Assembly: GCF_963676685.1 (NCBI RefSeq) | Contig: NC_092350.1 | Span: 38,936,001 to 39,000,000, forward strand | Direction of reading: 5' to 3' | Source: Mytilus edulis | Taxonomy: Eukaryota | Length of the DNA stretch: 64,000 nt | Shown: piece by piece, positions 13,489 to 64,000 of the stretch | How the letters are laid out: every line of letters starts with the position of its first letter | Numbering within the stretch: the stretch's first letter is position 1 | Translations under genes and position numbers: made by a program | Notes under the pieces: model-generated | Databases searched by the model: none | What the model saw: only the letters and a program-made list of their open reading frames with translations | Told to the model about the DNA's origin: nothing

Positions 13489-15173
13489 GGGCAATACAAG
13501 TGGGCTTAATAATGTTGTAATTTATAAGATGCATTCATCTGCCAGTATTGTTGAATGAAGGGATGGATACCTTCAACATATTATTGCAAATTTTTTTCAG
13601 TTTTAATTTATTAGTACTATAAATTTCAAGAGTCTCCACTCAAAATAAATTTATATTGATATGATAACTGTCATAATTTTACAAAGGAAAATAAAAATTC
13701 CATTCCAAAATGTATTGTATTCCAATATGAAATAGTCCGATGCAGACAGAGGGCATTTATAGTTAAGCATTATTTGTCTTTCTCTATATGATATAATTTT
13801 AACTGTATCGTTCTTTTCTTTCATTATCATTACACTCATGACAATACTTATCTAAGTTGTTTCCTGTACTACATCTACAATAAGTTGCCAAAATATGACT
13901 ATAAATCGTTTAATATAATGCTTCTTTATTTAGAAACTCTATTCAAAGATTTGCAAATCTTAACATCTAACAGAGTTCATGATACATGGCAAAGGGGACA
14001 TAATCTTCTTGCACCTGAAATGCATGGATGTAAATGCACACGACGGATCCATATTCGATGTATAGATGCTAATAAATATGCATACCAATCATAAATTATA
14101 TATGACCATAATATATTCTGCAATTAATCTTCTGAGACAACTTTAAATAGGTTATTGACGACATACCAAGGACATGAGTTTTCGGTTTATTTTCGTAACA
14201 ACATTTTGTTTCAGGAAACTCTGATTTAAATGACTACAGGAATATTTCAGCAAGTATGAGTGTATAAGTAGTTTTATTTGGGACTCTGAGTGTCGTTTAC
14301 AATAATGATTAAATTCACATAGAGATAGGCATTCTCTCGTTCTTAAAAAGTTGTGAAATTTTGTTTTGTTTTATTTTATCGATTAACTACATGCCTGTTT
14401 GAATTCAGTATGTAATATTTAATATGTCAAAAGAACATTGGTTTAAATTGTATTGGTTTGTTTTAGCATAAATATTGAACATAGATAGAACTATAGTATG
14501 TCCAATTTTTTATCTACCATAAGCACGACTTCTTGAAGATATGATATTTAGATGGAAATTGCAGTTACGAAGGAATAGTGAGAATATCTGTTTCCATTTT
14601 CGGTCCAAAGGACTTGCAATTTAATAATACAGTGTAATGTCGAATACCACCTTTGTTGTAGTGTCAAAAAGACAAAAGTTCATTTCTTATTAATCTCCGC
14701 AGCGTATGTGTGTCATCAAATGACTATCGGATCAGCTTTTTTAACTGATGAATAAAAACAGCAATTTTCGTAGTGGTACAGAAATACATGTAGAAGAGTA
14801 AAGGGTTCACGTCATAATATGAAAGTTTAATCAAATGCTTTTCTTGTATTTTATGTAGTAAGTGTTATTCGATGTGTATTTTATAAAACTTATGATATAA
14901 TCGAACTAATATTGTATTTATTATTCATATAATTCAATTGACAGATCATGATGCGAGTAATCATAAGTTTGTATGTCATCAATTTAAGAAAAGGTACTTT
15001 ACAATGATAAACTACATCGTTGTTTATTCTTAAAACCAATTTTAATACTTACTCAACACTTGTTTGAGTATATATTTTACACAATATATAGCTGCTTTTT
15101 TTTTTTTAGATAATAATGAATTAAAAAGGCAGTAGCGCCAAAAGATCTTTTCCGTCAAATAATGTTTTAAATC

Positions 15174-18100
15174 CTATAAGTTGTACTTCTTTTTCCGACG
15201 TTTACCGCAAACAAATACATCCCAGATCCGCTGATCTTGTACCTCAACTAAAAGCGTCAGTAAACTTCCGGATAAAACGGTTAATCCTAATAGCCAAAAC
15301 CACCTACTTGGATCCTCCTCCACTAACTGCCTCCATATTGTATTCCATATCAGAGCACCAGCGTTTCCACCTGCGCCCACTAATCCCGCTACAACACCAA
15401 TGTGTAATGGGAGGACATAAGGAACGATAGCATAAGTTGTCCCTTCGGACATTTGTACGAACACGCTGAAAAATATCATGGCAGCAATGGCATTGGGTAT
15501 AGTAGTCATAGTACTAAAGATAATCAGCATTGTACCCTCGCCTACAAGACAAGTGAAATGGGCTGTCAGACGACCCGCAATGCCTAAATGTTGACGCAAA
15601 ACATCAGAATAAATCCCACCCATTGCTCTAGCAAAGAGATTCATTAGACCAAATAAGGATGCAACCAAACTAGCTGTATCCTGATCAAGAATGCTGCATT
15701 CGTTAGATTCGTCCAGTCGGACAAGAATTGGTGTAGTCATGTTTGTTGTATTAAATTGATTATTGATATCGTTCAAACAGTCCTCCTTTTTAAATCTATA
15801 TAGAAAATAAAGGTTCATAACGGTATTGACAGCTATTTCTACTCCAAAACACATTCCGTACTGCATCACCAAAACCACCATCGTCACAGCTGCCCAAAAC
15901 TTACCAACTAGGCTGGTCGGCTCTTTATTTTCATCGATCTGTTCTATTGGAGACGTCTGTACTTCCAGTTTGTCTACATTTGTTTCCTTTTCGACTAAAA
16001 ATAAATGTCAGTTTGTATTTGAGTACTATGTAAATAAAAGCAACAGTAAGTTATTGTATGTAGTTAAAACAATTGTTAATTTCCTAATGCATGTAAAGCA
16101 AAACTTTGGTTAGCTTGCTTGCTTTGTTTGTATAATGTACAATCATATTAGGATAACTCCCAATTTAATTCAAATATTATATATACAGGTTAAACAATGC
16201 CTCTAAATATTGTTTAAAGATGTCAATCTTATTTAGAAAGCTTACATAAACAATAATACAAACAAAGCAAGCAAGCCAACCAAAGTTTTACTTTGCAAGC
16301 ATTAAGAAATCAGCTGTAAATAATTTAAAAAAACAACTTAACAATACAAATAAAAAGCTATAACATTTGACTATTCCAGAGGAAGACCGAACCAATAGAT
16401 AACTATAACATGTATAATTCACTGGTTTAGAATATATCTTCTGAACTGGTATGATTCTGGTGTGTGTTTGCATCGATTTTATGTCTATTTGTTATAAACA
16501 GCCTCGATTAGCTCGTGATAGTGCGTTCACCTCGAGTGCGAGATGTTGTGGGTTCGACCCCCGGCCGGCTCAAACCACAAAGACTTTGAAATTGGTATTT
16601 GCCGATTATCCACTAAGCACGCGCATTACGGAGCACGAGAACAGACTGATAGGCTCTGAGTTAGAAAAATGTGTCCGGATAAGGTGACATGTTTCCCTGA
16701 GGAATATTGCCTTGTGAGCTAGCACGTTAAATATCCGGCTCAATGTTCCGGTCAAGCACAAAGCAGAGAAAATATTCATATTACATTTACATGGGCTGGT
16801 CCTGAATACAAGTATGCATATCAATTTATCGCTGTACGTAAGTATCCATTCATCTTTATCATATTCACCAATTTGTAATACTAGTAAATGATAATGACAA
16901 AGTCATTTGAGATAATTAGCAACCTCAAGTATATCTGAAGGACTTGAAATAGAGTTCCCCAAAAAGGGCAAGCTTCCCATTATATGCTAGGGATCATTAC
17001 TTTTAAAGTTTCACATAACTCTACAAACGAGATATCTGACAAATGGAGACGTTTAGCATGCAAATAAAACACATTCAAATCAAAATAAATTTCCATATCT
17101 CCGCAGCAACATTTTTTCATGGTCATTTTATGGTATTCCGTCATGACAGGAACATCGTGTTATAGCTTGCAAAAAACCCTAATTCAAAGCAAACAGAATT
17201 TCATTATCTCCGCAACAACATTTCATATGCATTTCATGGTATTCCGATTCTCGTGCTTTACTTGCAAAATTTAAAAAAGTAACACGAATAGTAAGCGTCG
17301 GGCAAAAGCCAGGCAAAATGACTGACAGTTATAAGACAGAATAACAATATTCTTAATTTCAAAACACGCGCGTTTCGTTTACAAAAGACTCATAAATGAC
17401 GCCGAAATCACAAAAATTAAAAGGCCAAATGAAGTACCAATTTGAATATTGTTTAGGACCCCAGAAATACAGCTTTTGTCATATATTTAACGTGGGGACG
17501 AACATCCTTGGTATTTTGAAAAATAATTAAAGTTTTGTAAAAAGTTATATCTCAAAAATACTAAACTCCGAGGAAAATTCAAAACAGAAAGTCCCTAATC
17601 AAATGGCTAAATTTAAAGCTCAAACACAACGAATGGACAAGAACTGTCATATTCCTGACTTAGTACAGGCATTTTCTTATTTTCAAATTAGGTAAACAGT
17701 GAATGTATAATTATGACAACGTCAATGATAATTCATGCACTGTTGAAATCCATTATTATTTTTATCAAATCTTTTTATTTATCAAAAGGTGTTATCGTAT
17801 ATATTATATAATTTCTGTTTACTAGATCAGGTTTTTCTAAGGCATCATTCAAATTTAAAGACAGGTCTCTGTTTAAAATAAACTTAGACTTGAGTGATTG
17901 TTATTTGTTTAAAGTCTGGTAACACTAACTGCATACAGAATGAGGACAAGGAGAAGTCAAACAATAGATCTAATAGCAAAGTTCTGCATAGTGCGTTCAC
18001 CTTACCTTCTAAAAACGCGGGACTTTGTTTTTGAAACTACGTCATCGATAATAATAGAAATATTATAGTGTGGAAAAATAAAACATCAACGAATAACTTC

Positions 18101-20365
18101 GGTTAATTCTTATTTTCATCAAACCTTAAAAATCAAAGTATATGATGTTCTACGTGATAATTTATGTAATTTCAAGGATTTATTGTTACTGACAGTATAT
18201 TTTCCCGACAACTAAGTACATGTTCAATTGAAAGCAGAAAGATTAGTAACTTGGTTGCCCGTATTTGCTAGTCTGGAAGTTATATATTTATCAATACCGA
18301 AATATGCAATCCTTAATGACCTGACAATAGTATCGTAACTAGAGAGCATTATGACTTTGCATGTATAGACGAGCAATGCTGAATAATCTAAATTATTTTG
18401 CTTTTCCAAGATTATATTCTTTTATGTGTATGGCTTTGATTTTCCAAAAATCTTTGGAACACCGGGCATTTTCCCTCTCAAAGCCTGTTGTATATGGTCA
18501 TTTCGGGGAAAAAATATTTTATATTTTACTTTTATATATTTTATATTTTTTCTATATCTTACCTTCCTTTGGCATCTCTACTGTCTTTGAGTCATTTTTA
18601 TATCCTAAATTCGCAACACCTTGTGTTTCATTTTTTTTCTTTTCTGGTAATTTTGCAGATGGTGGCAATGTACGGTTTTCCCAAAGTCCTTGTGGACAAT
18701 CATCAGAAGTGAACAGTATTAAAATCCCTGGAAAAAACCACACACACTGTTTTAGTGGAAAGATCTACGTTCCATTTACTAATAGTTTTGTACATTTACA
18801 AATTGATAGTTTTGCACATGCTTCTCATGTTGAAATCGAGAGTAACGTCAAAATGTCTATAATTAATTTTTTTTTGTCTACCAACTGGTCTTACATTTTT
18901 CATGCACTTCCAGAATGAGTACCAATTATACGTTGTCTTGTTTTTTGTGGTGTTTTTCTTATTGTTTTATTGTTGTTGCATTGTCTTTAGTTTTGTATTC
19001 TTATAGACTGCTGTTGGTCTTTTGTCGATCTTCGTTTTATGCCATGGCGTTGTCAGTTTATTTACGACTTACGATTTTCATATTATTTTGGTATCTCCAG
19101 CCTCTCTTTTTGAGTAAGTTAATTTTTTCAAAACTGAACAGTAAACAAACTGGGAAGACAGCTGAAAAAGTATGCTTACAAATTGAAAAAGAGGGAACTT
19201 TTCATGCATTTTCGTACATGTCCGATGTCACAATGCTCATGTTATTACGCCGAGGTTAGAGCCTATTACTTTTTTATTTTAAATGAAAAAACTTACGTTT
19301 TGTGGTAAACTCTACTATCAGATTATAGTCTTTATATCCCGTTGATACGATAATATGTATGACATAAAAATATTAAATTAACTGTGAACGAGGTCCGGTA
19401 TCGATATACCTCTTTAGGTCAATAGTTATCAAAGGTACCAGGATTATAATTTAGTACGCCAGTCTGTTTTTCCTTTTCATTTTTAGCCATAGCGTTGTCA
19501 TTCTATTTTCTTTTAAAGAGCATTTAGGACCCAAAATTCCAAAAAACATGATTCTTTACAAATCAGATTGTTTGAAATATACTCAATGATAACTTTACAA
19601 AATAGTCAAAGAAATCATATGTGTTGTTATTGTTTTACGGAATAGTGCGTTCACCCGTTCAAACTTCATTCGCCTATGCAAACATGTATATAAAACTACA
19701 CTATATCATAATTTGTAGAGCCTACCTATGAGAACACAGATAACGGAAGGTATGACGACTGCTATCTTCCATGCCAGGAATTCGTCTGCTCCAAATACTT
19801 CCATTAACCGAAATAATCCCGGCATCAAAATAAAAGTAAATCCTCCCCCTAGATTTCCCCATCCGGCAGCTATTGCGTTAGCAGTTCCTACTATCTTCGA
19901 ACTAAACATTGCAGTTGTCCAGAACTGACACGGAACGAATGTTCCACCTAATATTCCAACGAATAATCGCAATATAATCAGACCTGTGCCACTTTTAATT
20001 AAGCCCGCTAGTGCCATTGGTACAGCACCAGTAATTAGAAGACAAGACATTGTTTTTCGTGGTCCATATTTGTCACACATCGGTCCGATAATTACCCTAA
20101 CAGCTACGGTAGCAGCAACACTAGCAATGCCTGAGTTAGCAAGGTCTGTTTTTGATAACTTGAGTTCTTTTCTTATTGTGGGGAGTAATGGTTGTAACCC
20201 AAACCATGAAGTGAAAGCGATGAAAAAACAAAACCACGACGAATGGAAACTTCGCATGTATGGACGAGCAATGCTGAATAATCTGAATTGTTTTGCTTTT
20301 CCAAGATCATCTTCCTCAATATGTTTGGCTTGTATTTTCCCGAGAACTTTGGTACAGCAAGGCAT
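15174..20365 (-). CDS. NRT2: Nitrate/nitrite porter (NNP/NRT2 family, MFS), paralogue B; 3 coding exons, ~541 aa
   Basis: Exons 20365-19726 (640 nt), 18727-18563 (165 nt) and 15994-15174 (821 nt) give 1626 nt in frame. Intron positions and phases match paralogue A. Motifs GTANAIAAGWGNLGGG, FGLMNLFARAMGG and GVVAGLVGAGGNAG are present. Confidence 0.93.
16085..16304. mobile_element. Foldback/MITE-like element; a related copy lies at ~38110-38400
   Basis: The ~55-bp imperfect inverted repeats are taatgcatgtaaagcaaaactttggttagcttgcttgctttgtttgtat and atacaaacaaagcaagcaagccaaccaaagttttactttgcaagcatta. Confidence 0.65.
16500..16775 (+). mobile_element. tRNA-derived SINE in NRT2-B intron 2
   Basis: tRNA-like head with B-box gggttcgacccc, followed by a core (gactttgaaattggtatttgc...cactaagcacgc) resembling mollusc Meta-type SINEs. 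Confidence 0.65.
18355..18486 (-). pseudogene. Degenerate fragment of NRT2 coding exon 1 (acceptor, ATG and first ~35 codons) inside intron 2 of paralogue B
   Basis: Aligns by eye to 20250-20385 (gacgagcaatgctgaataatct..attg/attattttgcttttccaagat). It translates KIKAIHIKEYNLGKAK*FRLFSIARLYMQS versus KIQAKHIEEDDLGKAKQFRLFSIARPYMRS, with an in-frame stop and a frameshift after the ATG. Confidence 0.85.
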
Positions 20366-22951
20366 TATTCCCGCTCAAAGTCTGTAACATAAATTTAAGA
20401 AATTATGTAAATTATAGTAAGAATCTGAAACAGTCTAGTAAGATTTTGTATGTATACCTGCTGATTATAACGCACTGGTTAATCCGTTATGATCATCAAG
20501 CAGAAAGTTATCGGTCACGATCTTTGTTGAAAAATGAAAATTTTGAGAGAAAATACATTTATTTGTAATAATTGTCATCTAAATGTAGAAAATTGTGTGT
20601 TTCATCTTTGTATTTTTTACAACAACAAAATACTTCTGTCTGATTTAAATTGTGTTCAACTTTGCCATGAGAGCGGAGATAACTCAGATATTATTTTTTT
20701 TAAAGAATAACATATGTAGCAAGGAAACGAGGCCCGTTACCCCAATTTTTATTTTTATTTTGATAAAGCATATTATACGAGCTATCTTTTCATATTTCAT
20801 CTAAAAATAATATCGGTTAGTTTTCTTTCTTTTTAATACACAAAATTGTTTTTTTCATGAACTTTCCTTACAATGTTTGACAATTTTGCCAAACATATAG
20901 CCTAGTGTGACCCATACTTTTTATTATATTTTTGAATAAAACATAATATAAATAGTTATCAAAGGTACCAGGCTTATAATTTAATACTCCAGACACGCGT
21001 TTCGTCTACATAAGTCTCATCAAAACAGTTAAAAAGCCAAACAAATACAAAATTAAAGAGCAATGATGACCCCAAATTCCAAATAGGTGTGCCAAATACT
21101 GCTAAGGTTATCTATGCCTGAGTTACGAAAATCCTTAGTATTTTGAATAATTCATACATTTGCAAACAGTAAATTTTAAACAAATTGACCAAATAATTGA
21201 TATTCATGTCAACATCGAAGTGTGGTCTACTGAGATGCTGATACCCTCGGGGAAGAAACGCCCACCAGTAGTGGCATCGACTTAGTTGTATAAATAGTTA
21301 TCAAAGATACCAGGCTTAAAATTTAATTCGCAAGACGCTCGTTTTGTCAACATATAAACTACATTTTGGGAAATTATCAAAAAATATCTATCTTTTGATT
21401 GCAAAATACATTTTTATGATACAGAGGGTGAAAGCCATTTTGTATGTGTTAATTTTATTTGCGACTGTTTAATATTCCTGCATGTCTACTGTGAAATTAG
21501 ACACAAATAGCTTTCATCATTTCTGAAATTGAATCTAGAATCCGTAGTATGAAAATCTAGATATTCATTGTTAACCCTGTTGCACTGCTATCATAACTAA
21601 TTTATTTCATAAAAAGCACTTGTCATTTTGCGGTGTAGAATTCCCATTTTATTTACGCATTTATCGTACGGTACTAAATATATATCAGGTAACAGGATAC
21701 AAAAACGAACACTTTTATTTTTTCATTTGTTAAATGCAGGCGATTTGATATGTTTTTAATCATTAAGATTAATTCGATAGGTAGAAAAAGAAAAGAAAAA
21801 AAGGACCATAAATCTAAACCACCAACAAATATCGAAACGTCACTATAGAGTAAAAAAATAGGAGGCTATAAAATATCTGTTAAAAGTACTTACAATGGGG
21901 TTTCTTGTCTTAATTTTGTTTAAATTTCAACAATGAATAAGAAGAAATTAATATTAGTAAATAGGGTATGGAAGAAGTTGAGAGGTTGCCGGTGGATTTC
22001 AAAAATATTTCCCACTTAGATTATCGAGTCTGTCCAGTGTATTGTGTATTATCGATATTATCAACATCGCCATGTCTACTATATCGTGTCATTATTGTGT
22101 CAGTATCTATAGTAGAAATTTCGATGATGATAGAAGCGAGTCAACATCGTGTTCATATTGGGTACCAAGTCTATAACTTTGTGCTTACATCACCGACCGT
22201 GCTAGGACTTTATAACCAGTCAAGGTCGTTAAAAACGTCCATAACATCACGATGTTGTAAATAGTGAATCAAAATTTTGTTAATATTGTTAACCGATTCA
22301 TACTTTTCTGTTTGCATCGTAGACATAACAATGTTGATAATATCGTGTCAATATCGTATTTATATTGTATTTGAGTTTTTACCGTTATTTTATATCGTTC
22401 ACATTGTCAACATCGCGATGATGAAAATATCGTGTCAAATCGTTTATGTTGAAAACCGAGTCAATACGCCTTTGTTAAAATTACATTGTCGTCAACATCG
22501 CGATTTTGATAATATCGAATGAACCTTGTGTTTATATTGTATACCGAGACTTTGTGTTAACATCGTTCATATCGTCACCATCGTTTCAGCATCGTTTTTA
22601 TAATGAAAACTGAGTCTATGTGTTTACACCGTTTGCTTCCTCAAGATCGCGATGTTAACAATATTATTTCAACATCGTGTTTATATTGTATACAGAGACT
22701 ATACCAAATAACAACTCAATTTTGTCATTTTATGGGGGATTTTTTGCTGTTTTTATCTCTTCTACATTTCTCTTTAACTCGTAGCAACTTAGAGCCTAAC
22801 AAATGATATACATGATGTTGACACGATATCAGATATCGTTAACACAGCAATGTAAACGACGTAAACACGATATTGGGATAAAATACGCAACCGACGGTCT
22901 TTATCAATGGATGAAACTATACAAAATATGTCAAGCTATAATTTACCGTAC

Positions 22952-23430
22952 AAAATTGAGAATGGAAATTGGAAATGAGTCAAAGAGACCACAACCCAAC
23001 CATAGAGCAGACAACAGACAACAACCGAAGGCCACCAATGGGTCTTCAATACAGCGAGAATCTCCGCACCCGGAGGAGTCCTTTAGCTGGCACAAATATG
23101 TATACTAGTTCAGTGACAATGGACGTCATACTGAACTCCGAATTATACACAAGAAACTAAGATTAAAATCAGTCAAAAGACTATCAAAGGCCAGAGGCTC
23201 CCTTTGTTTGGGACAGGCCCAAAGATGCAGCGAGGTTGAACATGTTTTTGAGATCTCAACCCTCACCCTATACATATATGCAATGTAGTAAAAACAAACA
23301 CACAGCAATATACACAGTGAAACTCCGAGTCAGAATAGGTAACAAAAGAAACTAAACAAAATTACAATAATACATGAATTAACAAAGGACTGCTAGCAGC
23401 TACTTACATGCCAGCCCCAGGCCTCAATTA
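22952..23430 (+). repeat. Dispersed repeat; inverted related copies at ~24740-25090 and ~46835-47045
   Basis: aaattgagaatggaaa..gg..aaagagac.acaacc...atatactagttcagt is matched by actgaactagtatat...ccccatttccattctcaatttt at 47 kb, and gagatctcaaccctc by gggagggttgagatctc at 25 kb. Confidence 0.7.
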
Positions 23431-26204
23431 CAGCCGATTTCATTGAGTGTGTAATGAAAGGTAGAATCCTTGGTTAGCTTGCTTGATAGCTGAGCCGTTA
23501 AGTCGATATTATGTAAGGTATCCTACCCTTCTTTCGAATTAGTCTAGACTTACAGACATGTAATTTGGCTATACTCGGACTTGTCTACTTTTAAAGGATG
23601 GCAGTTTACCTAACCTGCAATCGACTGCAAACTGATTGAAAGATTATGTCTTCATCACTCGAATATCAAGCACAATTCCTACCCACTTTTATAACACTTA
23701 TTCTAACATAATGAATATTATGATGTTCTTACTTATAGTTCAGATCCTGATAAACATTTTACACATTCAGTACAGATAGACGTGTTTCTGTGTCAGTTTT
23801 CTTGTTTTCGAGGCAGAAATGTTTTTTAATGACATTATACATGTTTAAAGAGCTCAAAATATTTACGTTCCGGAGAGTGGTAACTTCATCTGAAATTTCA
23901 CGCCGTGAAATTAGTGCACAGGTACAATACATAACTATGCAACAAACCTGTTCAACTACTTTTACAAGGCGAAAAAGAAAGTCGAATTGTGAAGCCCTTA
24001 AACAATACATTTTTAATCTGAGCATGCAAATTGAAGATTATGTTTTATATATTTCAATTAACATATTTGCAGAACAAAAACATTTATTTTGAGAATCCCA
24101 GACACTATATTAGTTTTCACTTTTTCCACTAATTCCACGTGTTTTCAAGTGATAGTAAACTCGCAGTAGCCCACAAAGCAATGTAGTTCATTGAGTCGAT
24201 TGGTCAGTTTTTCAAGGACATCATTGGCCTTGTGTTTGGAAAATTGATATGCAAATATATTCTGACGTCAGGAGTTCTCGACTTGTTCACCATTAGAGCG
24301 AAAAATATAACGTCCGTCGTTATGACATAACTGCTTATGTAAATAAACTCATCATAGATATCAGGAATAAATTAAGTATATACGCCAGACGCGCGTTTCG
24401 TCTACAAAAGATTCATCAGTGACGCTCGAATCCAAAAAAAATGCATCTCAGTTTGTATATTATGTATCTCTCAGATATTTCCAACCATAGATGTAATAAA
24501 GTAACAAACACAATTTCACTTCAAAAGCTAACCAAACCTTTCAACAGACTTACTCCAAAGGGATATAGTTACGATACTATTGTCAAGTAATTAAGGATTG
24601 CATATTTTTGTATTAATATTGATTCCCTTATAGGGTCTTTGCATCGGCAATATACATATTTATTCTAAAACCAGTTGTTAGCATGATACGGGTTATGTTT
24701 TCGTTTATCTTATGATGGTATGATACTAAACCCCTAACGGGAGGGATTTTACGTGATTTTCATATGATGAAGACATAATATGTCAATCAGTTTAATTGAG
24801 GTCTGGAGCTGGCATGTCAGTAACTACTATAAGTCGTGTGATGACTTATTCATCATTGTCATTTTGCTTAGTTTCTTCTATCACCTATTCTGACATCGGA
24901 CTCGGACTTCTTTCAAACTGAGTTTAGCTACTGTGCGTATTGCTATGTGTTTCTTTATTCTACATCAGGTAGAGGTATAGGGGAGGGTTGAGATCTCACA
25001 AAACATGTTTAACCCCGCCTCAGTTTTGCGCCTGTCCCATGTAAGAAGCCTCTAGCCTTTGTGAGTCTTGTATGGTTTTTTTAATTTTAGTTTACTTTTG
25101 AATTTTTCATATTTGTTTTTTCTAATATTTTGGTTTAGAGAACTTTTAGGTTTAGTGTACTTTCACAACTTATTAGTAGAAGAACTATTAATTTCAGCTT
25201 CTCCACTTGAAACCTTAAGTTAAATAGCTTCTCTGTAAGCAGCAACCCTCATTATAGAAAACGCAAGCCCTGGAATATCGTTTCAACTGGGAGATATATA
25301 CTCAATATGCAGGTGCTGCTGGGATGTTGATACATAGAAATGAAAAGCTCACAATTTAACAACTAAAGACAAATTTTGAATTTTAAAAAGTACTTATCAT
25401 CAAGAAAATTTAAGAAGGAGCACGCATTTTAGTTGAATATTTTTTTTCTTGTCTACTCAAAACTCGTAATGCCGTTTTCAAATATTATATTCTCAAACGC
25501 TCGAATTATAAAATGGTGAAAATCATAGCAAATAGCATTAGCAAATAGCAATGAAAACGGATATAAAGTATAGAAAATTGTGCAAACATTTTCATTTATA
25601 TATGAAAAAAAGCATTTTTTATGTTGCATTAAAGTAATAATGATAATTTGCAGTACCTTTGTGATGAAACTCCTTGTGATAAAACCAATCAGGAAGTAAT
25701 CGTTAATATATATAATGCATTCGTTTTAAAGTGACAAACATTGATACTGTTATTTACAGATGTGAAGATATGTTTGATAGGGTAAAATGAGACTTACATT
25801 ATTCGTTTTAACGACGCATTAAAAAGTGTGTTTACTTAGTATGTTTGATAGCATTCCGCAAGATATTTGGGAGTTTAATTTCCTTTACTCTTTATATAAA
25901 TATCCTCGGTGTACAATTTTTAGAAAATGATGAATACTAATTGCTTTGAACTTTTATAAGTTTAATTCTGCACTATTAAATCATTTTTTTTAATTTTCTG
26001 TTCCGTCATCTTGGCTCCGGTTTTTAAATGTCTCAACTGCATAGCAAGTGCGTAAAACATTGGCATTGAAATAATGATTGAAGAGACTACATTCGTCCTT
26101 GTATTTCATTCATGAATATTTTCTTTTACGTTTAGCTTAATAAGAGACAAAGGTAGTTACAAAGTGTAATTAACGATTTTCAAAACTAACAATTCTTATA
26201 TATA

Positions 26205-26412
26205 AAAAAGAAGATGTGGTATGATTACCAATGAGACAACTGTCCACAAGAGACCAAAATGACACATACATTAACAACTATAGGTCACCATACGGCCGTC
26301 AACAATGAACAAAGCCCATACCGCATAGTCACCTATAAAAGGCCCCGATATGACAATGTAAAACAATTCAAACGAGAAAACTAAAGAAAAACAAATATGT
26401 AACACATAAACA
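26205..26412 (+). repeat. Dispersed repeat family (partial copies at ~4848, 40363, 51236, 55810)
   Basis: Shared aagatgtggtatgatt(g/a)ccaatgagacaact..ccacaagagacc-aaatgacaca. Confidence 0.8.
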
Positions 26413-28157
26413 TATATAGTCCATTTTAATATAAATTAAGAAACTATATTTATAAATTATAACAAAACTATGGTTTCAACTCCCGAAGGCAAAGTTGATC
26501 TTTGACTTCGATCATGGATTTGTCATTTTTTGTCCTTTTTGGTCATTCAGATTTTCAACTGTTTTGGTTCTTATAATCTTGGCTCAAACATATTTGGATG
26601 ATGGTAAAGAAATGCTTCGGATGCATAGAATATATTTGTTGTTCTTAATTTTTGAACATTGATAAAATACTGTTGCCTAAACTTTCGCATTATATTAATA
26701 AAGTATGTTTGGTCCATTGCAGTCAACAAATGTAATATCTTTTTTGTATCAATAAGCTAGAATGTACATAAGGTTGTAATTATTGAGCAATTTGTCACAG
26801 AGAGAAATCCATATGTTATTAACGAACGCATCAATGTGTGTGCATGTTTATTCAGGGATTGGCTAGACGTACAAGAACTGATATGAGTCTCTCACTATTG
26901 GTTGGTTTAACTTGGACAAGTTTATTTGTCGCAGGTTACATGTCCTCGAACAAATTGTCATTAGCCACAGCGAACAATTTCGTTTCGGAGCCTCGTACGT
27001 AGACTTTTCAAACTAGTTATAAGGTGTTTGAATTATCAGAACAACTATTTTGCATCGAATTTTACAAATGACTGTGTTGATTTACTCTACAAATGAACTT
27101 GATTTTGGACAGATGTTGTGTAGCGAACCATGTCCGTCGCAGCGTATATGGAAGTGAATAGTTAGCAGCACCATTTTTTAAATAGAAATTAAGTAAATGA
27201 CACCAACGCATGCATGCAGGTTAGGAAGATACATAAAATAGTTCAGCCTCATCGTGCATGGATTGTTGCATCAGATTTTCCGTATTTTGGAAAGCATGAA
27301 ATTTTCAAAGAATTTCTGCTATTTATTTCACAATTTGAACACTGATTTCAATCTGTGCTTATTGTGCGAAATATTTTACCGATCCGTGTCTTCACGCAAT
27401 CTCTTCATCTTACTAATTGTCCGACATTCACGATGAATTCTGGTGCAATTTACTATGCATAAACATGCGTGTTTTCCCTGGATCATTTACCGATAAAGAT
27501 TTCTGTAATATTCAATATTTTACTGTTATGCGAAAACGAATTCGATCTGGATTTTCAGCAAAAACAAAACGTTATCATTTTTTATTCGTTATTTTCGGTT
27601 ACAAATTTTGCAAAACATTTTCCCTCTCCTCAGTGATAATGGGAAATACTTTTAAAATCATCTTTTCGTTTGTTCAAACTTGTTATTTGTTATATATTTA
27701 TTTTGTACCACTATTTCTCATAAAGAAGCCTAAATAAAGATATATATAATCTCAATGAATTTAATTAATTGTGTGTTTACTTGACAATATCAGGGTACCA
27801 GTATCTATATTGCTAGACCCCTTTCCATCTCGTACTTTGAATGTTTGACCAATTTAGTATAATATTAAATATACTTGTATTTCAAAATTATCATGGGGCG
27901 TAATTTATATGCTAGCATATGTAAATGGGTAAAACTGTAATTGTTTTAGATGTGTTTGTGTTGTATTTTCGTAGTACTTTTTATAACAAATTCACTAAAA
28001 ATAAGAAGGAAAATTTAAATCAAGTGAAATAATATTGAAGACCGTATTTAAATCTTAATAAATACATTCTATAATAATGTTTATTTTTAGTTCAGGTAAA
28101 TGACCTTTCATCGTTTTAAAGTTTGTTATCAGGAAGTTTAAAATAAATGGAGAAAAT

Positions 28158-30290
28158 ATGGAGTCCTTTGATGCATTGAAAAGCGTTCTGAATTCATTTA
28201 CAGGGAAAGTCTGTACTAAAAAGGATATCAATACGGCACTTGAGCTGCTGGGTAAATCCATCAACGACTATACCAAAACTCTGGAAAAAAAGAGAATACT
28301 ACGTTATATCGACGTGAATGATGTGGATCCAAAATGGACAGTCATTGGGTCTGGTCATTTTGGATACGTATACGCCAGCAAATATGGGGGATCGAAGGTT
28401 GCTATCAAAATATTCAAAGACGAATCAAAATCAAAGATTCGAGAGGGAAAGATACTGCAGGACTTGAGCCATGAAAATATCATAGCATTTCGAGGAATTG
28501 GATACATCTCACAATCAAAAGCGAAAGAAAAAAAATTACAAGTAAGTGATTCAAATAATGAGGAAATGATGTTTCTAGTCATGGAGTATATAGATCAAAA
28601 CCTGTTAAAGTACGTAGATGGGATGAGAGTTCATGAAAGAAAAGGACTGCGTTACGATATGGTTTGGAGTATTGGACAGCAGATTATTAGTGCATTAAAC
28701 TATCTTCACAATTTGAACATTGCTCATAGAGATCTAAAACCGGATAACATTCTTTTGGAGGTAGGACCGAGAAGAATCGTCGTTAAGCTGGCAGACTTTG
28801 GGCTTGCAACTCACGGCAATGAAATAAACACAAATCCTCCACGTGATGAAAGAATGCCTTCATGTATCACTGGGTCCAGAGCCAGTTCAAGCGTTGCAAA
28901 TATACGATGGGGTGCACCTGAACTATTTGAAGAAACCCTAGGTCGGGAACGGTCATTAGAAGATTATAAAAAATCGGATATATATTGCTTTGGGAATGTA
29001 CTTACATTCATGTTGACCGGAGAACGACCTTATAGCAAAATGTCAACCAACGCACTATATGACACTGAGGATCATACGGATAACATATCAACTCCAGATT
29101 TACCGAAAACTCTATCTGGTCATTTGATGGATGCGATCATTGAGTGCCACAAAGAGATTCCAAAAGAAAGACCGAAAGCTTCAAACGTTTTGAAAGATTT
29201 CTTCAGTTTGGAAAATAATCCGTATCTTTTGCAGACTAACTCGGAAACTGAAGCAGATTTTTTCAGTTGTGGATTCATGGAGAAGACAGATATATTTGTT
29301 GCCGACTCATGTACTAACAGAGAGGCGTCACAGATGGGTTTCAATGATTCTGGAATCAGACCTACAGGATACGACCATTTGGATTTAAATTGTGTCATTG
29401 AAGTAAAACATGCGCCATATCGAGACAGACCAGATGAATGGGATCTTAATAAAGAATATACGGATAATTTGGACGAATTTATAACAATGGCAAAAAAGAA
29501 AGTAATAGATAACAATCCTACTGTAGCTTTGAAGGAGTTGACATTTGCAAGACCCGGTGAAGACGAAAATCAACTTATTGAATTCAAATTTAAAGAGTCT
29601 GATTATATTCACCACAGGGCTATGAGAAAAATATGGATTGATTTTTCAAATCAGCAAAAGGCTGAAGAACTTCCCTCGAAATCAAATGTACATCCATATT
29701 TTAGTAACACGTTTGGTCTTCATGTTGCAGTCCTTACAGATGAAGGTCCTGACAAACCACAGAAATTTTTATTTCCTCGTCGTGCTCAAAGAGAGGGAAT
29801 GGCTGCACCAGGGAAATTCACTTGTGGTGCCGTCGAAAGTGCATCGAAACCAGACTACAATTTACACAACGGTAAAACGTGTGTTGATTTAGTAAATACC
29901 GCAGCGCGTGGACTGAAAGAGGAACTCGGACTAGAACTCTCAGGAAGTGACTTAGATGCTATTTGCTTAACCACGGTTTACCTAAAATTTGACACCCATG
30001 AATGGGGACTATGTGGTTTTGTCGATTTGAAAGATAAAAGAATAGACCCAAAGCATAGAATAAGTGCCAATAGTTTGAAAGATATATTTAGCACTGGACC
30101 AAAAGATAAATTTGAACACCAAACGCTAAAGTTTATAGATTTTGATTTAAAAACAATGGTTGAATTCGTTTTCAATAACCATGAAGACTTTGCAAGCTCT
30201 GCAAAACTTGTAGTTGTGAAAGTTTTGCAAGCCTTCTATGGGTGGCAACGAGTACAACAAGAGTTTGAAATTATGCGCCATGGGAAATAG
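28158..30290 (+). CDS. Protein kinase (TKL-like/Ser-Thr) fused to a C-terminal Nudix-like domain; coding region in a single exon, 710 aa
   Basis: Kinase motifs GSGHFG, VAIK, alphaC Glu (IREGKIL), HRDLKPDN, DFG, RWGAPE, SDIYCFG and KERP lie at aa ~57-350. The C-terminal half has FGLHVAVLTD..FLFPRR..PGKFTCGAVE...AARGLKEELGL, a Nudix-box-like pattern. A splice acceptor (tttttag) at ~28090 lies just upstream of the ATG. Confidence 0.9.
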   Translation: MESFDALKSVLNSFTGKVCTKKDINTALELLGKSINDYTKTLEKKRILRYIDVNDVDPKWTVIGSGHFGYVYASKYGGSKVAIKIFKDESKSKIREGKILQDLSHENIIAFRGIGYISQSKAKEKKLQVSDSNNEEMMFLVMEYIDQNLLKYVDGMRVHERKGLRYDMVWSIGQQIISALNYLHNLNIAHRDLKPDNILLEVGPRRIVVKLADFGLATHGNEINTNPPRDERMPSCITGSRASSSVANIRWGAPELFEETLGRERSLEDYKKSDIYCFGNVLTFMLTGERPYSKMSTNALYDTEDHTDNISTPDLPKTLSGHLMDAIIECHKEIPKERPKASNVLKDFFSLENNPYLLQTNSETEADFFSCGFMEKTDIFVADSCTNREASQMGFNDSGIRPTGYDHLDLNCVIEVKHAPYRDRPDEWDLNKEYTDNLDEFITMAKKKVIDNNPTVALKELTFARPGEDENQLIEFKFKESDYIHHRAMRKIWIDFSNQQKAEELPSKSNVHPYFSNTFGLHVAVLTDEGPDKPQKFLFPRRAQREGMAAPGKFTCGAVESASKPDYNLHNGKTCVDLVNTAARGLKEELGLELSGSDLDAICLTTVYLKFDTHEWGLCGFVDLKDKRIDPKHRISANSLKDIFSTGPKDKFEHQTLKFIDFDLKTMVEFVFNNHEDFASSAKLVVVKVLQAFYGWQRVQQEFEIMRHGK

Positions 30291-33200
30291 AACTTTTAAT
30301 TTAATCGTGTATATTTCAATGTACTTTCGTTTTAATGGATACACAAATTCGTAAAACAAATCATGTTATAACACTCTATCTGAATTTAGTTTAATATAAA
30401 AAAAAATGGAGATTTGCTTGCCTGTAAAATAACTAGTTAACTGTAGATATATATCTGTTTCTTTTTCAACAACATACCTCTCCTCCAGATTTTTTAAGAT
30501 TTGCATTTTTGTACACATTTCAACAAATACTACGTATTGTGAACGAACAGAATTCCGAGCAAGACAAGTATTAAATAGATAACATTTTGTATATCAACAT
30601 GTATATACACTTCATGATACTCATAAGTATACACCCTTTATTCTTCCGAACAGATTTTTTTTTTATCAGGGAACCTAGAGAGTCGGTTTGCCCTTGGTAA
30701 CTTTTTTTTAAACGAAGCCTCCAAGTACGGAGTCCGGCAAACAAATATTGCCATCATGTCCTATTCATTTTCACCGCCTGCGAAGTTATTGTGTAGGAAG
30801 GTGGTAAATTCTAGAGTGTCTGCTTTAAGGAAATCACACTATTGTTTATACGAATCGATTCGCTCTCGGCGCCGCTATAGTGTCGTGACTGTATTATGAC
30901 GTCGCCGTTTTCGAGTCCGTCGCAAAGGCTGCTAATTTATAAAAATAGTGAGCCGCTCAAAGGGACGTTCCACTAAAGCAGGAAAATGATAATGAACATA
31001 TCATGTTTTTCACAACTGTGATAATTAGATTAAAAATACATTTCCATAAGGAAGGGTCTGATTGTATTGGGGTTTACGGAATACAGAATAATGGTTAATA
31101 CTGCAGAATAAATTGCAAAAAAAAAGAAGAAAAGATAAGAGAATGATGAGGTGCTAAAATATAAAGAATAAAAAATATTGGTAACACAAACTAAATATTA
31201 ATAAATGAATGACCCTCTATCCAGACCCTTATGATAAAAAGAACATATCAATTCAAAACACATAATCATCATGCATAATCAACACTAAGAACGTTGGAAA
31301 TTCATAGCATATTCAATATAATTTAGTACCCTCTCGAACCATTTTCTCGAAAACAAAGTCGGTAACATATACTTTTTTTCGGCAGCGTATCGTCGCGATG
31401 TGGTATGTAGGGTTCAGTGTATATTTCCGGGGGGAGGGGAGGGGAGGGGGATATTAATAGATCAAGAGTAACAGCATGTTAGCGTATAGCTTCTGGAATC
31501 TGTAGTTTTCTTTTCATCAGAGTGTTGTAAAAAAGAACAATGAGTTTCGACTTTCATTTTTTTTCATATCACATGCCGGAAACGTCATAACTATAGTCTT
31601 CTATGCTACATGTATAAATAATTCATCCAAAATCTCATTTCATATTTGTATTTATCTGGCTCAGCCTATCGGGTAAATACAAAGCAGGGTCAAAATTAAT
31701 ATGTTCTAGTTCTGAATATATGCATTAAACTTGCCACTGGACGTAAATTATGTTTGAAGTGCTATTTGAAATCGTTATTTATTTCACATGTGACGACAGA
31801 AATTATCAAAGTGTCTTCCATCGTTCCCAAATTTTCCTTTGACATCTTACGCCTCTTACTTTTTTTTTCTTCTTTTTTTTGTGGGGGGGGGGGGGGGGGG
31901 GGGGGAGGGGGAGCATGGAAATGAGTTATTCGTATCTATTAATCATGTCTATTGATATATTAAACGTTAATAAGATAACGCTAGTTGAAAAACATCCAAA
32001 ACTTTACATCGGTTGCTGGCTGTCGAAGTCAAAGAAAATTTAGCACCGTATTATATTGTACATGTTGCTCAATCTTTCTTTAATGCTTAAAGTTTGTTCA
32101 GGCTAACGGCTAACATAATTTTGGCACAAAAATAAATCATATTTTGTTGTATTTCTTTAAACTGTCGTTGACGCACTGTAGGACCAGCAAGTTAAAAATA
32201 AGGCCTCTATAGACGTCAAATAATCTGGGAATATCAAACACTATGCCTAGTTTTATATTTTGGTACTATTGATTAACTACAACAACAATAAAATGCTTCA
32301 CTGAGAGCAGCCTGATACGCCCGCAGATGTTGAACCATGAACAGTTTGGGCACGTTTGGACACAATATTCAAGCTTGATACTGTCTGAGTTTGGATTGTG
32401 ATCATCAAATTTTTGACATAATAGAGGTTTCTGACACAAAATATATGTGGTCGAAGGTCATAAAAAACTATTGTGCGAAATATGACACCAAAGTTTCATG
32501 AGAACTGCTGAAAGCAATATTGAGTTGTTGTCCGAAAACGGAAAATCCCCCTTTTATAATGAATAAAACCCTATAACTCGGAAACATAAAATCTAAAATT
32601 CATAAAAAACGAAAGGGAGCTCACGTCAATAGATATAAACAATTCACCAAAGTTTTATGTCAATTGGTTAAAGCGTTCGACATGATGACGACGGACGGGC
32701 AGACGGACAACGATATACCATAATATGTCCCGTAAACGAGCGTATACAAATTTAACACGTACTATACATTTGGCTTTAAAAGTCTTAGACTACATCAATA
32801 GAAATATTTAACACACACACACACACACATGTATTTATGTAGAGTTACACGTCTTAAGAGTACTGCTAAATAGTAACAAACACATTAATGGTCCGTCTGG
32901 TGAAAGAATATTCCACTCATATAGACAAATGTTTTGTGCTGATGTTTATGTAATATTTGCAACTGAAAGTTTGGCAAAATTCAAGAAAACAATGGAGAAA
33001 AGGAAAAACCCAAAACAAGTAATAATAGTTCAGATGTAGGTTCGTGTTCAGATCACTTGGCTGTAGACAGTGACACAGTGAGATTGTCGGATTCCGACCA
33101 TGACTGAAAAGGTCAACCAGTTGTTTTAATACAAAGGTAGCTGATTAGCTCTTGATTCTTCGGTTCTTTTGAGAGAAAAAAAAAAATGCCCAATATGATA

Positions 33201-34795
33201 TAGCAGAGAGTGATTAAATTGGCACACAGATTCAATCAGTTATTTTTAAATTAACTATGATTAATCAGTATTGGCAAAAAAAAGTACATATACCGTAATA
33301 AAAGATAAATGTAATAAAAGAATATACATTTAAAGAAAAAGACGTGCACCCACAGAAAACTAGAAACTGCAATCTTAGTAATTTACTCTTAATTTCATCG
33401 GATCTCAAAGTTTTAACTCTTACCAGAATTTTTACTCTATCTAACAGTATAACTCGGAAGTTTTTAAGTGTAAGTCGAGCTTTGATTAGAACTCGTACTG
33501 GAATAAATGTTCGAAATCAAAATAAAACTCGAACTTTAACTCAAAATTTCACTGAAAGTCGAACTTACGTTGGTGCGATTATGGAGCGTTATGTAATTAC
33601 GGAAATGTTAACCAATTTAAATTTCTTCCGAAAATGGTGTCGTTAAGGGCTTTTTTAAAAGTGCCGAGTTTGTGGCTTTTTAATACAGCATTTCAGGTTT
33701 TATCTTGTGCGAATGGACAAGTTAGTGAATTTATTCTGTTTGTAGTCTAAATGGAACGTGTTACTTTTCAGCCCGGATACCCTCAGTATTCTGAAGTAGA
33801 AGATTCTAAATCTGTAAATCCGGATCCGTAAATTATTTAAATACGGCATGAGGCAGACATTCGTTTTCCCTATACAACAAATGCAATTAAAAAATTCAGA
33901 TGACTTCAACTTTGACAATTACTTTATAATAGACTGTATGTAATGTTAAAACGTTTCATTAGATTGATAAAAATATCAATTAATAATCGAAATACCTTGA
34001 AAAAATGTTATTATATTTTGTAGTGAAAAGGTTTAAGTCAACCCAATAGTTCCAAGCATTGCAAGAAATGCTCCTATGTTAGCAACGTCGTTCTCTCAGC
34101 GTTTGTTATATAGTTCCCGCCAAAAATCGATAATAAGATTATTTCCGTTTTAGCGGATTTAAAACATCGGTGACCCCCCTTTTTTATTTATGCTTTTAAA
34201 ATCTCCCCTGAAGCTGCAACTTATGCAGAAGTTTGAAGGAAAAAACATTAGTAGATTTTTTTTATTTCAAGAAAAATCTATAATAAATAGAAATTAAAAA
34301 TGGCGGGAAATGTTCAAAGGCCTTGAAAAATAAGGAAACTGAGAAAAATAAATGTGCATAAGGTAAAAGTTACAATTGAATGTTTTAGTTTTACCAGTTA
34401 AAGATCGTTTTTCAATAATTTCGCCTTCAATTAGCAACTTAGAGCGCTATTTCTATATTTCGTTATAACGCGATTCTTTACTTTTTGATGACGTCATATC
34501 TCGATAACAACATCGGTGACCCCAATTTTTTTTCCGCCTAAAATGTTGTAGATATGATCTGTATGAAGTATGATCTGTCTGCATGCAAAATTTCAATAAA
34601 TTATTATTAGTAGTATAAATAGTGTGATTTCCCTTTAAGGAGATTTGGAAAACTTACCTCAAACTCTTTATCATGTCCATGTTTTATGAATATGATCTCA
34701 TTAATACTGAAGTATATGTCACTTACGTCGTGTCATTAGTTCTTGGCCTCATTTTCACAATTTTGTAGTTAAGGTTAAAGGACTCCTCAGTAAAT

Positions 34796-63127: not shown

Positions 63128-63518
63128 ATGCAGTGCTGCAGTAAAAGTTGCCATTATTACTTTGTATGTGAAATTACAAAACAGTTCAGGAGTCATTTGA
63201 AATTTCAATGTAGAAATCTATTAACTTCAAGCAGACTTGAGAATCAACAGTTAAAAGCTGATAAACTTCCTCATCAGCCAGAAAATATTGTTCATAACAA
63301 ACTAACACTTCCTGTAAAATTTAAGTCATCAGATCCACATAAAGTAGAAGATATTGCTGTACAATTAAATGTACAGACCACATCCAGACATGATGCATCC
63401 CCAAGTGATCCGGTCGTCTTAGCTTTACATGGTATGCCTGGAGACGGTGGTGACTTTCACAACCTGTCCTTACAGTTAGCTCAACATGGCATGAAATGTA
63501 TTGCACCAGATTTTCCAG
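63128..63518 (+). CDS. First coding exon of an alpha/beta-hydrolase fold protein (gene continues past the window)
   Basis: Acceptor ttttcag at 63116 and donor CAG|gtaagt at 63518/63519. It encodes VVLALHGMPGDGGDF (oxyanion HG motif) and GMKCIAPDFPG, typical of alpha/beta-hydrolase strands beta3-beta4. Confidence 0.8.
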
Positions 63519-64000
63519 GTAAGTTTTCAAATTAGAACAAACCTTTATGCCCTGTCTTTAAGTAAAATGAGTGCTTGTATGTTATTATGTCTGTACTCAT
63601 TTTTCTCTATTAGCCAATCATTTGGTCTGTTTGTCACATATCAGGTTAAAGTATGGGTTGGTACCAAACACCTTGACTACATTGATTTTGCTCGTTTAAT
63701 TTTCATAAAATTTTGACAAAATATTAACTTTGACCCATTGACAAAACATATTAAAATATCACAAAACTTGAACCACACACTTATCAGATAAATGTTATCG
63801 GATATATAGCAGTTTGACAAACACTAATTTTGATCAATCAGAAGCTTAATATTTTCTTAACAACAGAATTGGATTTAGAACTTTCAGCTGATTTTAACAG
63901 AGTTATCTCCCTGTAGTGTCATGTACCACCTTTAAGTATTTAAAGATGAAGTTGTGTTCACATCCTAGAAGGAGTCCACATGATTGTTATGAATAAAACT

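Follow-up and report, generated by a model that had tools for sequence, protein, structure and literature searches.

What does a protein do that carries a protein kinase and a Nudix-like region on a single uninterrupted reading frame, and how old is such a combination? The question is raised by a gene in a 64,000-nucleotide stretch of Mytilus edulis DNA (assembly GCF_963676685.1, contig NC_092350.1, positions 38,936,001 to 39,000,000), which is referred to below as the window and whose first letter is position 1. The original prediction, made from the letters without database searches, described the product as a kinase–Nudix-like fusion and a novel signalling or immune enzyme, with the Nudix part possibly acquired from bacteria or the gene retroposed. 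In the analysis reported here, the C-terminal half was modelled as a Nudix-fold domain related to human NUDT22, and the fusion was found to be an old, constrained metazoan family and not a mussel novelty. The gene and the parts of its 710-amino-acid (aa) product are located as follows.

28131 to 30680, plus strand: transcribed span with a short 5' leader, the coding sequence (CDS) and a 3' untranslated region (UTR) of ~390 nt, from RNA-type assembly contigs
28158 to 30290, plus strand: complete single-exon CDS, one ATG-to-stop frame of 710 aa plus stop
28158 to 28325, plus strand: N-terminal helical region, aa 1-56, with helices 2-12 and 21-45, weakly conserved, from the full-length model
28341 to 29198, plus strand: protein kinase domain, aa 62-347, with a low-confidence activation-segment insert at aa 223-247, from Pfam PF00069 and PF07714
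29277 to 30281, plus strand: predicted NUDT22-like two-lobed Nudix-fold domain, aa 374-708, N-lobe ~374-505 and Nudix lobe ~515-708, from the AlphaFold2 model and from structure and profile searches
29826 to 29933, plus strand: variant Nudix box, aa 557-592, G557-x8-D566-x17-R584-G-L-K-E588-E589-L-G591-L592, from alignments and residue counts
30102 to 30119, plus strand: KDKFEH motif, aa 649-654, with D650 and E653 kept across the whole superfamily, from residue counts

Fold and conserved residues of the two halves

The AlphaFold2 model of aa 371-710, made with 19 homologs, was of high confidence (predicted local distance difference test score, pLDDT, 91.1; predicted template modelling score, pTM, 0.89). 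Its best Foldseek match was human NUDT22 (E 8e-12, probability 1.00), with a TM-score of 0.62 by model length and 0.72 by NUDT22 length. An independent all-against-all structure aligner also placed NUDT22 first (5lor_A, Z 22.3, root-mean-square deviation 3.6 Å, 274 of 290 residues aligned), the alignment covering model residues 4-324 and NUDT22 residues 0-287. The matches that followed were single-lobe Nudix proteins at Z of 13.7 or less, among them isopentenyl diphosphate isomerase (IDI) at Z 12.4, and dozens of Nudix structures matched at Z 8-14. The viral structure library returned generic single-lobe Nudix matches only (TM ~0.3).

At the sequence level the relationship is remote, the identity of the mussel domain to NUDT22 being 12-14%. 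Searches of the PDB sequences with the C-terminal half as a single sequence or a narrow profile found nothing, and the broad profile that included the remote relatives (alignment A4) was alone in reaching NUDT22 (5lor_A, E 1.6e-7, profile positions 61-209), with a match spanning the N-lobe and the first Nudix strands. No model of Pfam, NCBIfam or PADLOC matched aa 374-708. Pfam NUDIX (PF00293) gave no above-threshold match in the mussel protein, and its matches in the remote relatives were sub-threshold (E 0.00015-0.008). Protein-language features of the mussel protein pointed to NUDT22-like proteins as well, together with bacterial proteins of ~300 aa.

Judged from the model, the C-terminal ~335 aa are a Nudix-fold domain of the NUDT22 type. 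A Nudix-like C-terminal region with NUDT22/IDI-like affinity had been anticipated from the letters, and modelling followed by Foldseek, which had been proposed as the check, recovered the Nudix fold. The motifs on which that proposal was built lie at aa 519-528 (FGLHVAVLTD), 537-542 (FLFPRR), 551-560 (PGKFTCGAVE), 582-592 (AARGLKEELGL, nt 29901-29933) and 649-654 (KDKFEH), and in the model they fall on the expected elements, with strands at 519-526 and 536-542 and a helix at 578-590.

The mussel domain family is a homologous sister family of NUDT22 and not NUDT22 itself. Human NUDT22, a UDP-glucose/UDP-galactose pyrophosphatase (5lor, 5lou, 5lf9), has the same N-terminal beta-rich lobe and Nudix lobe and likewise lacks a conventional Nudix box (PMC5688067). 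It is, however, a stand-alone enzyme of ~300 aa, whereas the mussel domain is the C-terminal half of a kinase protein; its conserved motif set differs from the CG..E, RGL.EELG, HEWG.CG and KDKFEH of the mussel family, and it is less similar to the mussel domain than the tested bacterial relatives, which reach 20-30% identity. Type 1 IDI shares the Nudix fold, has a 'PG.WT..CGHP' loop that recalls PGKFTCGAVE and gave a weak profile match, but it is single-lobed, its catalytic His residues are missing in the mussel domain and it is a far poorer match than NUDT22.

This kinship brings in a first alternative, in which the protein would be a bifunctional metabolic enzyme, a NUDT22-type pyrophosphatase of nucleoside diphosphate (NDP)-sugars (e.g. 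UDP-glucose/UDP-galactose) engaged in nucleotide-sugar or pyrimidine homeostasis, with a kinase that only regulates or targets it and with no immune role. NUDT22 is the closest solved relative by both fold and sequence profile, and it has been described as a UDP-glucose hydrolase feeding pyrimidine salvage (PMC10101856). The low identity between the two speaks against this alternative, and with the evidence on spread and partners given below we regard a metabolic role as rather unlikely.

The residues of the putative pocket were counted in 27 animal and 64 remote sequences. The canonical box GX5EX7REUXEEXGU is not matched: 'RE' is replaced by 'RG' and the spacing from the Gly to the acidic residue is altered, with a beta-hairpin inserted ahead of the Nudix helix, although the R, EE, G and U positions are kept. 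At the position of the canonical 'RE' Glu all 27 animal sequences have Gly, and the remote ones have Gly (44), Ala (18) or Ser (2). R584 was found in every sequence of both sets (27/27 and 64/64). E588 was kept in 27/27 animal and 57/64 remote sequences, E589 in 24/27 and 62/64, E560 and D566 each in 27/27 and 62/64, D650 in 25/27 and 56/64 and E653 in 25/27 and 59/64. From bacteria to animals Y483, D/E529, R542, E560, D566, R584, E588, E589, W616, D650 and E653 are nearly invariant, and the motifs common to the domain family read F.RRS, PG..CG..E....D, A.RGL.EELG, (Y/H)EW and KDK.E. Such a cluster of acidic and basic residues is the pattern expected of a conserved metal- and pyrophosphate-binding pocket, and it points to a putative metal/pyrophosphate-binding centre.

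The same counts bear on the possibility that the domain is a catalytically dead Nudix fold used for protein–protein contact, as in TIRR/NUDT16L1, and the whole protein an ordinary scaffolded signalling kinase. The box is non-canonical, TIRR appeared among the weaker structural matches, and non-enzymatic Nudix domains are an established class (PMC5389931). A pure scaffold would, however, have no need for E560, D566, E588, E589, D650, E653 and R542/R584, which are nearly invariant in bacteria and animals alike, and a scaffold function seems very improbable to us.

The kinase half was recognised by Pfam PF00069 (Pkinase) over aa 62-347 (E 1.7e-37, 129.7 bits against a cut-off of 31.7) and by PF07714 (E 2.7e-32), in agreement with the catalytic domain that had been placed at aa ~57-350. 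The motifs GSGHFG, VAIK (K84), HRDLKPDN (D192), DFG (D213) and APE are all present, and K84, D192 and D213-F-G were invariant or nearly so in 28 family members. The nearest solved kinases were RAF1 (E 1.1e-17), BRAF (~1e-17), Src (1e-16) and GSK3 (7e-15). Because the motifs are complete and conserved and RAF1 and BRAF are nearest, the kinase half is apparently a divergent, catalytically competent Ser/Thr kinase similar to the tyrosine kinase-like (TKL) group. The automatic database names of family members (MAP3K7, dlk-1-like, CTR1) also recall the TKL kinases (RAF, MLK/TAK1, RIPK/IRAK-like). The match to this group is weak, however, as Src and GSK3 score almost equally, and the usual regulatory domains of TKL kinases are absent; there is a long, poorly predicted insert in the activation segment (pLDDT <50 in the full-length model).

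Expression, spread and age of the fusion

Assembled contigs of four sequencing runs (X1, X3, X5 and X13, one recorded as RNA-Seq and three guessed to be RNA) were placed on positions 26200-32100 of the window. In all four runs the contigs began at 28131-28151, ended at 30284-30680 and were colinear with the genome, with no joint inside the gene. The depth was zero over the flank 26594-27972 in each run, which argues that the contigs derive from transcripts rather than from DNA. The CDS is thus expressed without splicing, which bears out the intronless coding region read from the single ATG-to-stop frame. An AG lies at 28131-28132, just before the common 5' end of the transcripts, and the end near 28131 could be the start site or the acceptor of an intron in the 5' UTR. 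Expression was seen in a gut metatranscriptome with no known challenge.

A database protein of Mytilus galloprovincialis (P0001) shares 99% identity with the 710-aa protein. When the C-terminal region was used in a word-indexed search, 72 proteins were recovered, 70 of which had a precomputed Pfam kinase domain ahead of the domain and ~50 of which were 670-770 aa long. The carriers include bivalves, Haliotis, a chiton, Lingula, three Branchiostoma species, the hemichordate Glandiceps, the tunicates Ciona, Styela and Clavelina, the sponge Oscarella, Nematostella, Exaiptasia and many hexacorals and octocorals. No vertebrate, arthropod, nematode or echinoderm member was found among the 72, a list which is no rigorous test of absence. 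The names of all 72 were automatic or "uncharacterized", and literature searches found no paper on a kinase–Nudix fusion family. The claim that no standard animal family has this architecture was therefore wrong in one respect, as the architecture is widespread in metazoans, and right in another, as no known, named family exists.

A domain tree was calculated by a quick IQ-TREE search, in which the deep backbone was not resolved. The animal sequences formed one clade with short branches (Shimodaira–Hasegawa-like approximate likelihood ratio test, SH-aLRT, 99), within which the sampled tunicate, amphioxus, hexacoral and sponge-type sequences each grouped together. An architecture present across Metazoa and a single clade in roughly taxonomic order indicate an old animal gene family. 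Identity to other phyla was 48-67% for the Nudix-like half, 36-47% for the kinase and 14-36% for the N-terminal region (aa 1-56); the higher values of the Nudix-like half relative to the kinase suggest that it is under the stronger constraint.

A mussel-specific novelty is ruled out by the presence of the same fusion from sponge to tunicates. The suggestions that the Nudix part had been acquired from bacteria or that the gene had been retroposed likewise fail for any recent event. An intronless CDS and the existence of bacterial relatives of the domain would suit a recent acquisition or a retrocopy made in the mussel lineage. The fusion occurs, however, in seven animal phyla or subphyla (Porifera, Cnidaria, Mollusca, Brachiopoda, Cephalochordata, Hemichordata and Tunicata) as the single clade described above, and the genome holds neither an intron-bearing parent nor a second copy: one copy was found in the 64-kb window by tblastn, and this is the sole locus bearing the C-terminal domain in the 1.37-Gb genome. 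Its GC content (0.37) is near that of the surrounding chromosome (0.27-0.36), its context also matches that of the host, and intronless kinase genes, tandem arrays among them, are common in this genome. These observations contradict a recent horizontal transfer or retrocopy, which can hardly be true. As the deep backbone was not resolved, an ancient transfer may have taken place at the base of animals or earlier.

The number of copies differs among mussels. Four were counted in M. coruscus (on two contigs) and three in M. galloprovincialis, against the one locus in this assembly (the counts were based on P0001-P0005, P0017, P0021 and P0069), and the differences may reflect presence/absence or tandem-duplication variation. 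An amphioxus paralog (P0035) additionally carries a Death domain. Both observations speak against the metabolic alternative, with which other features agree: the family evolves slowly, the tree, where resolved, follows the main animal groups, the gene is single-copy in this genome and it is expressed in the gut without a known challenge.

Bacterial relatives and the predicted role of the domain

In an exhaustive HMMER profile search, 1.84 billion representatives yielded 303 matches at E of 1e-3 or less, of which 127 reached E of 1e-10 or less. Beyond the animal family these comprised many stand-alone proteins of 290-400 aa and a number of fusions, and the identity of the mussel domain to the bacterial members was about 20-30%. 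Several stand-alone bacterial members, among them P0117, P0102, P0106 and P0125 (alignment A6), have a hydrophobic helix at the N-terminus, ahead of the domain, and are probably membrane-anchored; in P0146 a TIR domain takes the place of this helix. Pfam domains found as partners among the 64 remote relatives were Pkinase (6), TIR (3), Peptidase_C14 (2), PilZ (1) and a helix-turn-helix (HTH) domain (1). The TIR, caspase and kinase partners are N-terminal of the NUDT22-like domain, the PilZ partner C-terminal; this PilZ domain, of a c-di-GMP-binding family, belongs to P0190 and is another partner from nucleotide signalling. Named relatives include a "caspase family protein" of Thermomonospora sp. 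CIF 1, a kinase fusion in the jakobid Andalucia godoyi and a 589-aa protein without a Pfam domain in the malawimonad Gefionella okellyi. The caspase parts (P0206, P0215 and P0150) match the NCBIfam model 'caspase, EACC1-associated type', and in P0206 and P0150 the match to the PADLOC 'caspase' model was confined to the caspase part.

The original prediction had linked such Nudix proteins to nucleotide-signalling defence systems, which is made plausible by the fusions to TIR and EACC1-type caspase in defence-like contexts. On the metagenome contig L020 the caspase-NUDT22-like gene directly follows an EACC1 gene (PF19953, E 7.8e-21), with an overlap of 4 nt at its start, which is the arrangement of the EACC1-caspase two-gene systems of Kaur et al. 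2020 (PMC7159879). In a Rubrivivax metagenome-assembled genome (L003:6389-9560), a TIR-NUDT22-like gene is followed by an overlapping 283-aa open reading frame (ORF) that weakly resembles an esterase or alpha/beta-hydrolase, and a second TIR gene comes next; the locus could be a multi-gene TIR system not described before. In another proteobacterium a single gene (TIR, hydrophobic segment, domain) lies between nirS and a HIRAN gene, and the Lentisalinibacter homolog lies ~2 kb downstream of a phage-type integrase. Of 401 sampled Pseudomonadota genomes only 3 had a match to the domain, and patchiness of this kind is typical of accessory or defence genes. The closeness of the animal clade to bacterial members (~25-30% identity) with TIR, EACC1-type caspase and PilZ partners, and not with metabolic enzymes, is a further argument against the metabolic alternative.

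The same systems allow two opposite views of the domain. It might be an effector that, after activation by the kinase or by an upstream signal, breaks down an essential or signalling nucleotide (derived from NAD or ADP-ribose, ADPR, or an NDP-sugar). Kaur et al. 2020 took the C-terminal domains of EACC1-associated caspases, of which there are ~50 alternatives, for effectors and counted Nudix among the domains that act on ADPr or NAD+ in conflict systems (PMC7159879); the conservation of six or seven acidic residues suggests real catalysis, and a TIR-Nudix fusion could be a two-step enzyme chain. On the other hand, experiments in a 2025 preprint of the Gao lab showed EACC1 itself to be the death effector, a pore-forming protein released by its caspase-like protease, which is fused to diverse sensors (PMC12642450). 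Moreover, the NUDT22-like domain is constant and its fusion partner variable, as is usual for a shared input module. We consider an effector role decidedly unlikely, and by analogy with the preprint the NUDT22-like domain occupies the sensor position of the EACC1-associated protease. The Thoeris type IV caspase-like effector has a C-terminal domain whose function is unknown, thought to bind N7-cyclic ADP-ribose (N7-cADPR) (10.1101/2024.10.24.620036).

The mussel protein resembles the EACC1-caspase systems in its modular design, an N-terminal enzyme plus a variable C-terminal domain, and the remote relatives of its domain form the C-terminal part of EACC1-associated caspases (P0206, P0215 and P0150). 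It differs in having a kinase instead of a caspase, and the domains are ~23-24% identical. We know of no EACC1 partner in animals.

We favour, with modest confidence, a reading in which the kinase is controlled by the Nudix-like domain through its binding, and probable hydrolysis, of a nucleoside-diphosphate-linked molecule. As the input module of the kinase–Nudix protein, the domain would bind an NDP-sugar or an ADP-ribose-type compound through the conserved acidic metal-binding pocket and would probably hydrolyse it slowly; occupancy of the pocket would switch the fused kinase, which would relay the signal onward by phosphorylation. The ligand may be an NDP-sugar, like that of NUDT22, or, in view of the TIR partners, a signal of the ADPR type. 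A stress, immune or cell-death output would be the likeliest setting; for animals, the only hints of an immune or cell-death setting are the bacterial partners, the paralog with a Death domain and the variation in copy number.

A similar design is known from TRPM2. Published reports (PMC6461439, PMC11479946) describe its NUDT9-homology domain as binding ADP-ribose, as still hydrolysing it in invertebrates and choanoflagellates and as gating the channel, so that in both cases a Nudix-fold domain would be fused to a signalling output and gate it. The output of TRPM2 is, however, an ion channel and not a kinase, its domain is of the NUDT9 and not the NUDT22 type, and homology exists only at the level of the Nudix superfamily.

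Several points weigh against a ligand-controlled kinase. Catalysis is uncertain with the non-canonical box, in view of 'RG' for 'RE' and the altered spacing to the acidic residue, and Pfam NUDIX stays below its threshold. The full-length model (pTM 0.71) has a low-confidence linker between the kinase and the Nudix-like domain and gives no fixed contact or orientation of the two. The bacterial contexts are not direct evidence for animals, and their C-terminal domains were taken by Kaur et al. 2020 for effectors and not sensors. Finally, slow evolution and a single copy would be no less expected of a housekeeping or metabolic protein than of an immune one.

A bolder version would make the NUDT22-like domain a receptor for a nucleotide-derived immune or danger signal, e.g. 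an ADP-ribose derivative such as TIR enzymes produce. The protein would then be a second-messenger-gated immune kinase common to animals and prokaryotic TIR/caspase conflict systems, which vertebrates would have lost and animals from sponges to tunicates retained. In this specific form the proposal is unlikely.

Surroundings of the gene and meaning of the family

Intronless kinase frames of the same genome include two tandem arrays. At G000:C1:44210229-44230470, ten intact, near-identical 270-aa ORFs are repeated with a 1,868-bp period, with one shorter 198-aa match at the low end of the array, and at G000:C3:19693082-19699011 there are four 284-aa frames at ~1,765 bp. The neighbouring genes in the window had all been taken as spliced, on which an isolated 219-aa exon-like ORF of the NRT2 neighbour (19706-20365) is only an indirect check. 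A 135-aa ORF on the plus strand (63128-63535) has a terminal alpha/beta-hydrolase-like segment ('HGMPGDGGDF...') and probably represents the initial coding exon of a spliced neighbour. Another plus-strand ORF (54263-54634) consists of three tandem units of ~41 aa (SKYMFR.SISKNPK.S.FV.IKQSLIL...), which implies a ~123-bp tandem DNA repeat. Over ~200 bp at 26200-26400 the summed contig depth of each of the four RNA-type runs lay at 15,000-34,000, and joints and loose ends were numerous; this is probably a very abundant dispersed repeat found in many transcripts.

Both folds, and the use of Nudix domains as gating sensors, are already known. The libraries and the literature searches showed no description of the NUDT22-related domain family, of its pan-invertebrate kinase fusion or of its occurrence in bacterial TIR/caspase/EACC1 modules. 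Since it has no Pfam, NCBIfam or PADLOC model, the family could improve the annotation of hundreds of bacterial and invertebrate proteins, and it could inform on the poorly understood human NUDT22. The presence of the gene in the genetically tractable Nematostella and Ciona makes experiments feasible. If the favoured reading is true, many marine animals have a kinase that is switched directly by a small nucleotide-type molecule via a Nudix-fold sensor. To our knowledge, no such switch has been described for protein kinases. With its sensor-like domain wired to TIR, caspase/EACC1 and PilZ in bacteria, the family is a candidate, open to testing, for an ancient signalling link that would join prokaryotic conflict systems to the innate immunity or cell death of animals.

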